From Podarcis pityusensis (Eukaryota): a stretch of DNA of 64,000 nt. The notes below the pieces were generated by a model. The model did no database searches, was not told where the DNA came from, and worked only from the letters and a program-made list of their open reading frames with translations. A program made the translations under genes and the position numbers. Positions 4,881-63,194 of this stretch are shown here, piece after piece (position 1 is the stretch's first letter; each line of letters begins with the position of its first letter). Where the stretch lies: the NCBI GenBank assembly GCA_964106645.2, contig OZ067042.1; one strand, given 5' to 3'.

Positions 4881-7800
4881 AGTATGAGGGGGTGTTATGG
4901 CCAGTAATGGTAGCAGGTAAGAGAACAGTCAGACTGGAAAATGATGTTAGGAATGAAAGGAGACAGGAACCCTCCCTTGTAAAAGAAAATGTGATGTTTC
5001 CAATAAAATTCAGTTTAGATTGCAATTATAACCCATTTGCTCAGACTCAAAAGACAAAAACACCCACCAGGCACAGTTTTTATTGTGATGCCTGACTAGT
5101 TTCCTGTGCTTTCTACACTTGCTTATTTTTTCTAATCCATCATAGAGAGGGCAGATGCCTTTTCCCCTTGATCAGTCTGTGTTGCTCTCTGAGAAAGAAG
5201 AAAGACCCTCTTATTGTCTTTCAAACCAATCTGCAAGCTTCTGAAAAATGTCCAGCTAGGCAACAGAAATGCATTGCTAATAAACACCACCCCACCCCAC
5301 CCCATCTGCCCCTGCGCCAATGGCTGTGACACAGGGACCATGGAAAGAATGCAGAGTCATGGGGACTGGGCGAGGGCTTGCCAGCCAGTCCGCATAACCT
5401 ATGTTTTGAGCACCCCATAATTCACACTTATTTGATTTGAACCAAACCCTGCATCCTTTTAATGAAAGCACATATGAGAGACAAGGGCGGGAGGGTGAGA
5501 AGGAACTATGTCTGTTGTAGCAGTAGCAATAACATTCCAGTCTCCATTTCCTGCACATGCTATGGCTCCCAATTTCTGTGTGGGTGTGTGGAGAACCTTG
5601 GAAACCTGTGGCATGGCATATATCTTTATAAAAATACAGTCCTGTTTGATGAAGATGGAACAATGTTGGCTGCAGCAAAACAAAGGTGGGTACATTGTCA
5701 TCTGTCGCATTTGAGGGGAAAGAAGCAGTTAGCTAGGGGCAATACTTTAGGTGTGTGTGTGTGTTTGTGTATATATATATATATATATATATAGGACTGC
5801 TCTGATGTGGGTGGAGAATCTATCTGGGTGTCAGCCATTTTATAGGGTTTAGAGCCCACACTGCTGTAGTATCACTGGATAGGCTTGTACTATAGCATCC
5901 CCTGGTCTTAAATATGTCCTGGATGGGGGTTTGTTTGGGTAAAGGAGAGGGTGTGAAAAATGGACACCGACTCCATGCTTAAATCTAGCACCTGCCTTGA
6001 GCACCACAAGGTCCTTTACTAGTTCTCTTATAATCCCAGGCAGAGTAAAACCATAATGCTTTTGGGTGTCAGATAGAAATGGTGCATCTTCCTGAATGAT
6101 CTTGAAAAGACAAAAGGGCCTGCGGGCATTAGATACATGGCAGAGGTGATGACTATAAGCAGGGAGGGGGCCCTGCTATTAGTGTGGCCTGCTTGGAAGT
6201 CAACCGAGGCCATCTTAGGAGCAACATGACTGCTGACAACATGGCTGAATATAATGACTTATGCTATTGTGCCAAGGGCTTTGAGCAAGAGACATCTCTT
6301 CCCCCATCCCCAGCCTAAAGCATGGCCTCTATGAAGTATGCTAAGGAAAAGGAACCCTTTATACTTCAGCAGTATAAATTCAGAGTTGGAAATAGAAGTG
6401 GAAGGAATCTGTGCATGTCATAGCATGAGTCCTCAAGGCAGGCAGTTGCAAACAGCACCTCAAGGAATACGAATTTGCTGCAACGCTCGTTCCTTTAGGG
6501 CACAGAACAACAACCAGGTTTTGCCACTATTAATAAGAGATGAGGCGGCTGTTTTAGGGTTGTAAGCCTCATGAAATAGTTCATATAAGGAGGGAACAGG
6601 ACCTGTGGTTCAGTTAGATAATTTTGGGCTCTGGGCTTCATAGTCTTGTGGGTGGGGTGCCCTCTTTAGATAATCTTCTGCATTACAGTACTTAAAAATG
6701 TTGTAAGCCAGGCCTGCTGCATTGGGGGGCCCTCCTGTTCATTCTGCTGAGTACCTGAAGTCCTGCCCTGCAGCACCACTGAAGAGGAAGTGCTGACATA
6801 TGATCTGGATTACGCTCCAAAATTTCCAAAACTAGATAATCACCATTTACCCCCCCTTTTTTTTTACTTCTGCCATTTTTTAGCTTCCAGTGAAAGAATA
6901 GGGAGCAGGTCACATGCTTTTTTGTTTTCTGGATGATGCAAACTGATGTTCATCCACACTGGCCTTTTGACAAGGTTATGGCCTGTCTTCTACATCTGCC
7001 ATTGCAAACCGGGGCACAGAAGTTTTTAATAATCAGAAGTTCAGAGCATTTCTTTTGGCTCAGCTTTAGTTTGCTTTGGTCACAGTGTGACTCCTGTGAC
7101 TTGCCATTATGATTTGCTATGGGTTTCTTTTGATATATCTCCTTGCAACCCTAGCTAGGCCAGGCCCAGTCTTCTACATCCTCTGAATAGTTTACCATTT
7201 ACCATTTCATAGCTCGTGGGGGAGGACTAAGGTCACTGACAACATGGTGGCAGGGCAGAGTAAAAGCTAAGATACTACGGAATATTCAATTCTTAGCCAA
7301 CTTCATTCTGACAAAGGGTGAGGGGGTGTATGGATCACTGCATTTGCAGATCATATTTTCACAACTGTTATTATATAGTTACCCTTTATCTTCTTGTGAG
7401 CTCTTGGCTCCATTTCCCACAAATTATCTTCCTTTGTCTCTTCCATGCAAACTCTTCAGCTCACATTGATTTCCTCTATTTGTAGAATGTTGACATGTGT
7501 TTTTTCTTTTAGCTTATTAGTGCATTTAATCATTGTTTGAATGTTTTAAAGAGTTGTTTTTAACTGTTTTTTAAACTGATAACTATTGCTTTATTATATT
7601 TTGTAATCTGCTTTGAGGTTTTATTACAATCAAGAGGCATCTAAATCTAGTGAAATACAGAAAATAGATAAAAATAATCAAAAGGCTACTTTAAAGATGA
7701 AAACAGAACAAAGTGCAAAAAGCAGTAAGAATGTAAAATGCTGCCTTATACTCTCTTAGAAGAATGACCCATGCTTGCATTATCCCATTAGCAGCAAGGG

Positions 7801-8345: not shown

Positions 8346-8719
8346 GTGGGGATTTGAATCCAGGCCGCCTCAGGCATAGGTGGTAACCATGACGTACACA
8401 GTGGCACTAAAGTGTAAGTCCTTCCTCTGTCTTTAAAGGTGCAAGATATAAGCTATATAACACTGAGTAAAAATGATTCATAATCTGAATGAGTCAACAA
8501 AGTGAGATGGTTGCAGGAAAAGGCAAGTGCTATTTTGAAATGCATTAACAAAAGGATTATTTGCACAAAAGGCTCTTTATCACTGATGGGGTCCAGTTCC
8601 AGATATGCCATTTTGCAAAGATTCGTGTCTATTGAGGAGCAGTAAGGGCAGTGAAGATTGTCCTTTGCCTCCATCACATCTTCAAGTACCTGCATAGCAG
8701 AGGGGTTGTTTTGTATTGC

Positions 8720-57630: not shown

Positions 57631-57708
57631 ACATGTCCGACTTTCAGAACAATAATGATAATCGTAGAGTGGCAGATATGAGTCAACGCCATGACAATCT
57701 CTCCACAG
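57631..57708 (+). CDS. KIF1A: KIF1A exon 15 5' extension via upstream alternative acceptor (78 nt): (Y)[25 protein letters not shown](V)
   Basis: Very long pyrimidine tract ending ccccttag at 57630. The extension is open and in frame with exon 15 and is a multiple of 3. Confidence 0.8.
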
Positions 57709-57842
57709 TGACCAATGCCTTGGTAGGAATGAGCCCGTCCTCCTCACTCTCAGCCTTGTCCAGCCGAGCTGCTTCGGTCTCCAGTCTCCACGAACGCATC
57801 ATGTTTGCTCCAGGTAGTGAAGAAGCCATTGAGAGACTGAAG
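57709..57842 (+). CDS. KIF1A: KIF1A exon 15 (short form): [44 protein letters not shown]
   Basis: ctctccacag|TG...AAG|gtaaga, 134 nt. The sequence is diagnostic of KIF1A rather than KIF1B or KIF1C. Confidence 0.96.
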
Positions 57843-58998: not shown

Positions 58999-59151
<153 letters not shown>

Positions 59152-59164
59152 TAATGGCTATATG

Positions 59165-59205
<41 letters not shown>

Positions 59206-60252
59206 ATAAAATATAGAGACAAAACTCCACCTGAGACTCTGGTGATACATAGAAGTTTTCATTAGCATTTTGAATGAATGTTTTGCCCCCTTTCTGAATG
59301 GGCTGCTGCTGCTGCTACACAATTATTACTCATCTAGCGATAGCCCATATTAAATTTCTATTAGAAGATCCAGCAGTAGCTTGTTTCTGTTTCCATTGGG
59401 CTGCTTGAAAGAAACAGAATTAGGCCTGTCCTGCTGAGTAGTTACACTTGGGGGTACTCCCTTATTCATAAGAACATAAGAAGAGATCCATCTACTCAGT
59501 GGCCAACAAGATGGCACAAGGGAGCCCACAAGGAGAGCATGACAGATATTCAGCAACCAGTCGTCAGTGGCATCTTGCCTCCAAACATGAGGGTCCCATT
59601 TAGCCTTCATGGTTAATAGTCATTGATAGACCCATCTTCTGTGCATGTGTCTAATCCCCACTAACAGTCCACTCCAGTTGCTGGAGGACCAAGAACTCTA
59701 TGAATGCATATTCTCTCTTCATTCATTGATATTTTAAATCAAAATCTCTTGCTATTAAAACACATAGATATGTTAAAGGTGTTTTTCTTCAGTACAGTGA
59801 ACACGAAAAGAGGACTGTTTGATAGCACTTTCCCCACCCAACAGCATAGGGAGGCAAGAAGTAGAACTAATGGTGTTTGTACAACCCTATAACCCAACTG
59901 CCTAGAACTAGTCTTCTTACATCATATTAGTTATGCTCAGGCAGAGCCAAAAGAAGCCTTGTCCTGATTCTAATACAGTTTATCAACCCCTGTTCTTCTG
60001 GGTATGTGTGAAATTATTACAGGTCCAATAGCACAACGTATTTCAGAAGGTAGCAAGGAGTGGGGAACTCAACACTCTAGCAAGGAACATCAATGTTAGT
60101 TCCTTAGGTCTTTGTTTCATTTATCAAAATTTACATATGATTACTAGAACAGTTTATAGTAGAACACTTTGATTCATATGTTTGTGATAATGATTTATTT
60201 TGACATATTGCGCATTTGAATTCTTTTTTTTCTTTCTTCCTTTGTCACGTAG

Positions 60253-60327
60253 CCACCCCCAGTCAAACCCCCAGTTAAACCCCAGGATGTTTTCCTGGAG
60301 AGTGTAGGGGTGTTTTCCCCCAAGAAG
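60253..60327 (+). CDS. KIF1A: Putative additional 75-nt cassette exon of KIF1A: PPPVKPPVKPQDVFLESVGVFSPKK
   Basis: Strong pyrimidine tract then cgtag|, donor AAG|gttggt, phase 0/0, no stops. It ends in the same GVFSPKK as exon 17 with only synonymous changes. Confidence 0.72.
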
Positions 60328-61580
60328 GTTGGTCTTGTTAAGGGGTTGTATTGGAGTGATCTGTGTGATTCCTTTTCAGACAATTGGTTTGTACTGTTTG
60401 GTGCCAAGAAAACATTCTGAATTCTGTACACGGTGACTAGAAGTAGTTCAGGGAGAAGGAAGGCACAGCAACATTCAGCATGTTTTCTATGAATTACATA
60501 ATTGAAATCATTACAAAGGGTGATGTAATAAGCTTGTTTGTTCACCCATGACTCTGCTCCATGTCACAAGCAAAGTATGTTACGTTACATGGTGCCTAAT
60601 TCAGTAGTGGAGAGAGCTCTGCATCATACTGCCTCCTCTCTCCAGAGAGGCCTCAGGTGTTGATTGCTTAGAGGCAGGAGAACAGAGCTCAGCCATGGCG
60701 GTTGCATCTGCGTGCCTGCTCCAGTAACTGCTCATACTTATAAGCAGGGCTGTCAATCAACTGATTGTAATCATTTCACTGCCTTACTTCTGACTGATTG
60801 ATCAGCGTTTAAAGTGCATTGGTACAGCTTTTCAGTGAAGATGATAATTTCATACTGAGAACAGTTGTTGAAACTTAGGGTTCATCCACACTTCCATTTG
60901 CCCATCTGCTTCCCCCCTGGAAAACCCATGGTTTAGCGCTAAATTGGAACAAATGGCAGTTGAGTTTTCAGCCTCCCCCCCCAATTTAGTGTTAAAGAGC
61001 AGGTTTTCTGGAGTTGAAGCACAGGACAAGTGGAAAACTGCTTGGACGCATGTTTGCTATTTGTGGGATTCCAATCCTTGCATGAGTAAATGGTATCTGG
61101 TCCACTTTGCATGGTGTTCAGATTGCTGTGATAGTTGCAATGCTAATATTTTTCCAAGAAGGGATTCCATGATGGCAATGGCAGTAATGTTCTGTAAGTC
61201 ATTTGATCTAACATAATGTTGATCTGTTGAACCCCCAAAATGAGGACCTTGCACGTGGCAGAGTGAGACCTTTGAAATTAAAATGTGCTTCTTTTCTGAA
61301 CACTTGGTAATGTGAGCATGTTGTTTCAGTAGGATGAATCACATTTTTATTAATAATTTTTATATCACTTTGTATTGTGTGGGGAAATGCTTGATAAAAT
61401 GGCTCATTATTTCCATTTTGGAGACATAGAAATTGAAGGAAATAAACTTTCTAAGACAAGTAGCTATATGTTTGAAGGCAGGGCAGGAGGAGAGTTTTGA
61501 TGTTGTGCAGTTGCTGCTCCTTACTCTGCAAGAAGATCTGATACAAGAATCTCAAGCAGAAGTGAAAAAGCCTTAGAGAG

Positions 61581-61925
61581 CATACCCTCCAACATTTCTT
61601 CAATGAAAATAGGGACGTCTCAGTCCATAATGATAATTTTACTATTTATACCCCACACATCTTACTGGGTTGCCCCAGCCACTCTGCGCAGCTTCCAACA
61701 CATATAAAAGCATAATAAAATATTAAGCATTAAAAAAAACCTTCCCTTTACAGGAAGGTGGCTCAGATGGCTTGGGGTCGGATAACTCCATATCCTCGAA
61801 CATTTCTCCAATGAAAATAGGGACATCATAAGGAAAAGCAGGACATTCTGGGATTGAATCAGAAACTGGGACAGCTTCTCTAAATCAGGGACATCCCTAG
61901 GAAATAGGGACACTTGCAGGGTCTG
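61581..61925. mobile_element. hAT-like non-autonomous element
   Basis: Termini CATACCCTCCAA / TTGCAGGGTCTG and multiple subterminal AGGGAC motifs. Confidence 0.65.
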
Positions 61926-63114: not shown

Positions 63115-63194
63115 ACACCACATCTGGTCAACCTAAATGAGGACCCACTCATGTCCGAGTGCCTTCTGTATTACATTAAAGATGGAATAACCAG
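63115..63194 (+). CDS. KIF1A: KIF1A exon 18 (start of FHA domain): TPHLVNLNEDPLMSECLLYYIKDGIT(R)
   Basis: ctcttag|ACA...AG|gtaata, 80 nt. The gene continues beyond the window. Confidence 0.97.

Follow-up and report, generated by a model that had tools for sequence, protein, structure and literature searches.

Sequence comparison across vertebrate KIF1A loci indicates that intron 17 of the gene in Podarcis pityusensis contains a real and ancient 75-nt cassette exon, which has been kept by purifying selection in the KIF1A of fish, birds, and this reptile. With moderate confidence, we regard it as an ancient, normally skipped cassette of vertebrate KIF1 motors whose inclusion would act as a switch in the linker between the CC1 and FHA domains. 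This linker is thought to control the dimerization and autoinhibition of KIF1A, and neurological disease arises in humans when KIF1A is misregulated. An isoform of natural origin in which the last strand of the linker is present twice would provide a ready-made test of the switch.

The window, that is, the whole 64,000-nt stretch of P. pityusensis DNA analyzed here (OZ067042.1), covers the 5' part of KIF1A, with the motor exons, a hinge exon typical of KIF1A, and exons 17 and 18. Exon 17 was matched to the sequence of 4EGX via a fish model that includes the cassette. The features on which the analysis is based are as follows.

59022..59097, plus strand: 76-nt KIF1A exon 17 (phase 2 to 0), which codes for the last part of CC1 plus the CC1-FHA linker, with the GVFSPKK block at its end
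60163..60252, plus strand: cassette acceptor region, with an AG-free zone, a branch-like TTGAC at 60200-60204, a pyrimidine tract, and a TAG acceptor
60253..60327, plus strand: cassette exon, 75 nt, in-frame, encoding a Pro/basic spacer, a short hydrophobic stretch, and a second GVFSPKK block
60255..60278, plus strand: tandem duplication of a 12-nt unit, 11/12 identical, which doubles the Pro-Pro-Val-Lys start
60328..60333, plus strand: weak donor GTTGGT, with GTT[G/T]GT at 11/11 homologous copies
60334..60410, plus strand: GU-rich 3' flank with an 8-nt element, TTGGTGCC, common to the reptile and four bird loci, and no UAG cluster
63115..63194, plus strand: KIF1A exon 18, 80 nt, the start of the FHA domain, matching KIF1A CC1-FHA structures

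The exon had been proposed in a sequence-only reading of this DNA, and the elements on which that proposal was built (an 88-nt AG-free zone at 60163-60250 with TTGAC and a pyrimidine tract, 25 open codons, the donor AAG/GTTGGT, and phase 0/0 between exons 17 and 18) were all borne out in the sequence. Taken alone, the AG-free zone is unremarkable; when all gaps of this kind in the window are ranked, it takes approximately 15th place. The cassette has an AG acceptor, a GT donor, a length divisible by three, and no stop codon, as expected of a frame-preserving exon, and the same holds for 11/11 homologs. Its final seven codons encode a heptapeptide identical to that at the end of exon 17, the presumed source of the duplicated block, and the five nucleotide differences are all synonymous (pS 1.0, pN 0), exactly as had been noticed. 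The chance expectation in intron 17 for a GVFSPKK heptapeptide followed by GT is 2e-7. The donor of exon 17 is GTA in every copy compared, whereas that of the cassette is GTT[G/T]GT. The GU-rich flank with TTGGTGCC is a candidate site for a splicing regulator. The skipped form is represented by the 4EGX and 4EJQ sequences and by the spliced fragment P0119, in which exon 17 is joined to exon 18.

A second individual, represented by a DNA run approximately 2.4% diverged from the window, carries the cassette with both splice sites intact. It has a 4-nt pyrimidine insertion in the acceptor zone and a C>T substitution at 60257, which changes Pro2 to Leu, the residue found in birds. The 12-nt tandem duplication was absent from all of the bird and fish cassette copies compared, and the cassette, ancestrally 63 nt long, was lengthened to 75 nt in the reptile by this duplication.

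Three further observations were made elsewhere in the window. A (TA)n(TG)n microsatellite lies immediately 3' of exon 17 (59152-59224). At 61580-61860, there is a very high-copy interspersed repeat on which thousands of contigs stack. The hinge exon (57631-57842) has a long upstream in-frame acceptor as well as a shorter internal one, and its long form aligns to a similar segment of KIF1B.

Orthologous loci were reached through the neighboring exons, and the reptile exon 17, cassette, and exon 18 were compared singly. The labels bird-like, fish, and mammal-like were inferred from sequence, unless the source names the species. A homologous exon was present in the corresponding KIF1A intron of four bird-like loci (L001, L013, L017, and L024; 63 nt each) and three fish loci (L004, L008, and L016; 63-69 nt). 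Together with the KIF1B exons described below, the eight KIF1A and three KIF1B copies are 63, 69, or 75 nt long, and each is bounded by an AG acceptor and by a donor of the form GTT[G/T]GT. Over the cassette, fish pairs diverged with pN of 0.02-0.06 versus pS of 0.28-0.76, and the reptile diverged from birds with pN of 0.20-0.28 versus pS of 0.58-0.78; the cassette is less constrained than exon 17. The exception is the comparison of the bird loci L001 and L024, in which pN equals pS, and the L001 cassette is possibly decaying in its lineage. The sequence-only reading had envisaged such an ortholog survey, which yielded intact, low-pN copies in birds and fish but one bird copy under apparently relaxed selection. 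Separately, we observed that the bird KIF1A copy at L001 2254-2316 has no Ser-Pro pair.

The sequence-only reading had allowed that the exon might be present in automated sauropsid annotations; it was found in automated fish models. In zebrafish XP_021326561.1, the 5' junction between exon 17 and the cassette is used, and the model then runs on into the intron; in Ameca splendens MEQ2288767.1, the cassette is spliced at both junctions. The intron 3' of the fish exon in L004 (12454-12600) stays similar to the zebrafish read-through sequence, which suggests either conserved splicing elements or a close relative.

In a donor-anchored scan, cassette exons scored 37-62, and the maximum in two complete mammal-like introns (L005, artiodactyl-like, and L006) was 5.8; the exon was not found in these two introns. 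Two loci with assembly gaps in the intron, L002 (a KIF1C-like cichlid gene) and L003 (bison), were left out of the presence/absence call. A degenerate pattern search of metagenome host DNA returned no mammalian copy; its first pattern had no match, and its second gave five true loci and two chance matches (L021 and L023, which have no KIF1 exons). From these few loci, it is likely that the exon was lost from the KIF1A of mammals. The cassette peptide alone had no match in the PDB, the 50% representatives, or the 90% clusters, a search of low power with so short and Pro-rich a query.

The exon proved older and more widespread than first guessed, occurring in fish and birds and also in KIF1B, whose loci were told from those of KIF1A by their hinge sequence. 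At the corresponding position, KIF1B has a 63-nt exon in two fish (L018 and L020) and one bird (L019/L022), ending in an exact GVFSPKK followed by GTTGGT. A second, more diverged 63-nt copy, which has lost GVFSP, lies upstream in KIF1B intron 17 of the bird (L019 7099-7161) and of one fish (L018 10357-10419), and the KIF1B of the other fish (L020) likely has such an upstream copy as well. In the bird KIF1B (L019), the starts of the two copies, which occupy 7099-7161 and 8410-8472, are 1311 nt apart. The KIF1A introns that were scanned yielded no second copy.

The duplication that separated KIF1A from KIF1B took place in early vertebrates. Because fish and bird KIF1B carry the paralogous exon, the exon would predate this event. 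Furthermore, KIF1A and KIF1B copies resemble one another in the 10 residues that precede the block (mean BLOSUM +8, shuffle p 0.0015) but show no such resemblance to exon 17 (BLOSUM -11 and -17), which argues strongly for a single origin before the gene duplication. Similarity to exon 17 is confined to the last seven codons, in which synonymous sites are saturated. That the 3' end of exon 17 was duplicated to form the cassette is therefore an inference, which we consider highly probable, the alternative being convergence. The sequence-only account of an old exon duplication under protein-level selection is upheld for selection, which is seen across orthologs; duplication is the most likely origin of the last seven codons only. 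A mutually exclusive pair with exon 17 was ruled out, as exon 17 is in phase 2/0 and 76 nt long, the cassette is in phase 0/0, and the similarity is confined to seven codons. The cassettes are a case of an exon family older than a vertebrate gene duplication, with expansion in one of the paralogs and a seeming loss in mammals.

The three available P. pityusensis RNA runs contained almost no KIF1A reads: depth was about one read on exons 17 and 18 and zero on the cassette. Cassette words occurred in no RNA run. Evidence on tissue was obtained from chicken KIF1B. Chicken RNA-seq data list two 63-nt KIF1B exons, with starts 1314 nt apart, among retina exons (10.1101/2021.09.08.459463 Table S1); their PSI values are 21.5 and 19.1 in retina, 0.02 and 0.05 in other tissues, and 0 and 0.3 in neural samples (10.1101/2021.09.08.459463). 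The L019 pair agrees with the chicken pair in length, spacing (1311 versus 1314 nt), strand, and position. The chicken events GgaEX2015683 and GgaEX2015682, matched by coordinates and not by sequence, are very probably KIF1B paralogs of the cassette, and GgaEX2015682 is probably the diverged upstream copy. The KIF1B twin appears to be used only in the retina of the chicken, and a defined structural element can now be assigned to two unexplained retina-only exons. Human and mouse KIF1B are represented in that table by other exons, of 27, 201, and 39 nt (10.1101/2021.09.08.459463 Table S1). The zebrafish retina list contains no 63-nt kif1b exon, and no KIF1A exon of the size of the cassette is listed for the retina of zebrafish or chicken, nor in a zebrafish neural list. 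Mouse tables contain 27-nt retina-enriched tail exons of Kif1a and Kif1b.

Photoreceptor exons are controlled by Musashi through UAG clusters in the downstream intron (PMC4991804). UAG clusters lie 3' of the KIF1B copies in L018 and L019 (6-7 per 100 nt, within the top 0.2-1.4% of windows), suggesting Musashi control of these copies. No UAG cluster was found in the flanks of the KIF1A copies; downstream of the reptile cassette, the UAG count is 0 within 100 nt and 3 within 300 nt, which falls short of a Musashi-type arrangement. RBFOX, NOVA, and QKI signatures were sought as well, and none was common to the KIF1A cassette flanks. A neural microexon of the SRRM3/4 type was ruled out, as the exons are 63-75 nt long versus 27 nt or shorter. 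The reptile KIF1A exon could well be used in a sensory or photoreceptor cell type, a tentative assignment. Brain may be the wrong tissue in which to test the exon, because the apparent KIF1B twin has a PSI of 0 in chicken neural samples versus approximately 21 in retina.

Huo et al. reportedly described in 2012 that the linker, for which the end of exon 17 codes, folds into a beta-finger connecting CC1 with FHA and giving rise to the CC1-FHA dimer. The CC1-FHA tandem dimer promotes activation (PMC9314371). In the natural fish inclusion model, both copies of the heptapeptide align to the same residues of 4EGX. Across the family, G-V/L-F/Y-S-P is kept with constant spacing to the first strand of FHA. 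Also kept are a hydrophobic triplet, which lies four residues nearer to that strand than its counterpart in exon 17 does, and a short Pro/basic lead-in. Conservation is highest at the residues adjoining the FHA domain. The proposal that the exon, at the CC1-FHA junction, carries a second GVF strand was supported. An AlphaFold model of the fish inclusion form (P0156:50-250) had a pLDDT of 54 and was uninformative, and Foldseek confirmed only its CC1-FHA identity.

On this basis, we propose the following mechanism. The weak, conserved donor would keep the exon off unless a splicing activator is present; in bird KIF1B, activation would occur in the retina, probably in photoreceptors through Musashi. 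Inclusion would set a new G-V/L-F/Y-S-P strand and a short hydrophobic partner strand directly before FHA, and the beta-finger attached to CC1 would be pushed away by a Pro/basic spacer of 7-11 residues. By supplying FHA with a replacement strand or a shorter hairpin, inclusion would loosen the coupling of CC1 to FHA and reset autoinhibition and dimerization, more likely toward a more easily activated motor. This direction, which we hold with moderate confidence, is preferred by analogy with Kif1a exon 13 (PMC12436618) and the KIF1B inserts. A bolder version is doubtful: that non-mammalian vertebrates have, in both KIF1A and KIF1B, a photoreceptor-type switch older than the gene duplication and lost in mammals, in which a substitute beta-finger uncouples CC1 from FHA. 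If true, it would represent a natural means, 500 million years old, of freeing kinesin-3 motors from autoinhibition so that one class of photoreceptors can sustain high-load transport.

Other readings share part of this evidence. The main role of the exon might be to supply a second CDK/Cdk5 site (SPKK) and an SH3-binding PxxP, making it a switch controlled by phosphorylation or adaptors, as the sequence-only reading had suggested. SPKK is exact in the KIF1A of this reptile and in the downstream copy of each of the three KIF1B loci, and SP is present in 10/11 copies. The full S-P-x-K site is kept in these genes but not in fish KIF1A, the most constrained group, which ends in SPNE, or in bird KIF1A, which has SPKQ or has lost SP. 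PxxP was not supported as a conserved function: L004, L001, L024, and every KIF1B copy are without it, and the motif, doubled in the reptile, comes largely from the recent, reptile-only 12-nt repeat. Because neither motif is conserved, both ideas are weak, and we consider this reading unlikely. Substitution of the strand is preferred because the family keeps the GVF-SP strand and not PxxP or the full Cdk5 consensus. Unlikely, too, is a reading in which autoinhibition is unaffected and the exon adds or masks a surface for cargo or adaptors beside FHA in one cell type. The N-terminal half of the cassette, variable between lineages yet tightly conserved within fish, is consistent with it, as is the diverged KIF1B copy that still appears to be spliced in retina after losing GVFSP; however, the best-kept residues copy a structural linker strand and form no new motif.

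Read-through of the donor would turn the exon into an alternative last exon. The outcome would be a shortened motor-CC1 protein that lacks FHA and the tail, or else a transcript subject to decay. The zebrafish RefSeq fragment does continue into the intron, the donor is weak, and the reptile frame stays open for 30 more codons. However, the donor lies at the identical base in 11/11 copies and the length is always a multiple of three, the read-through tails vary in length and sequence between lineages, and both the Ameca model and the chicken table have an internal exon, which makes this reading very improbable. Least probable of all is that the reptile exon is a silent relic, once functional, comparable to the apparent loss in mammals. 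It would account for the lack of RNA reads over the cassette, though in runs with next to no KIF1A coverage, and for the amino-acid-changing variant in the second individual and the relaxed selection in one bird. A relic is at odds with a reptile heptapeptide that is exact despite saturated synonymous sites, with a sole length change that is in frame, and with splice sites that are both intact in two individuals approximately 2.4% apart, and the change of Pro2 to Leu matches the bird residue.

Among freely accessible papers, we found no description of the cassette, its duplicated nature, its age, or its distribution over two genes. It is present in automated annotations and probably in two rows of a chicken table. 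The fish models XP_021326561.1 and MEQ2288767.1 have the orthologous exon after exon 17, but they are undescribed predictions in which it encodes 21-23 aa and ends in SPNE, not SPKK. The chicken exons GgaEX2015683 and GgaEX2015682 resemble the cassette homologs in their length of 63 nt and their KIF1 family membership, and their spacing fits the bird KIF1B pair; they differ in belonging to KIF1B and in having UAG clusters, which the KIF1A copy does not, and they are table rows undiscussed in 10.1101/2021.09.08.459463. Tandem mutually exclusive exons share with the cassette an origin by local duplication and a shared 3' end, whereas the cassette differs from exon 17 in phase and length and is alike in seven codons. 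Because gene models include both exon 17 and the cassette, the latter is additive and not exclusive.

The closest known systems are inserts within kinesin-3 motors themselves. Inclusion of Kif1a exon 13, a 27-nt hinge exon, raises dimerization and velocity (PMC12436618), and KIF1B has K-loop and hinge inserts, attributed to Matsushita et al. 2009 in the papers that cite it (PMC12626424, PMC10987577). Like the cassette, these are in-frame alternative exons, and they tune kinesin-3 dimerization or activity in a cell-type-dependent manner. They differ in lying in the motor or the NC-CC1 hinge, in being mammalian, and in not being duplicates of a neighboring exon, whereas the cassette is part of the CC1-FHA linker, where it repeats a strand of the structure, and the mammal-like loci checked yielded no copy of it. 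By analogy, the cassette would function much as the established exons that tune kinesin-3 activity do.
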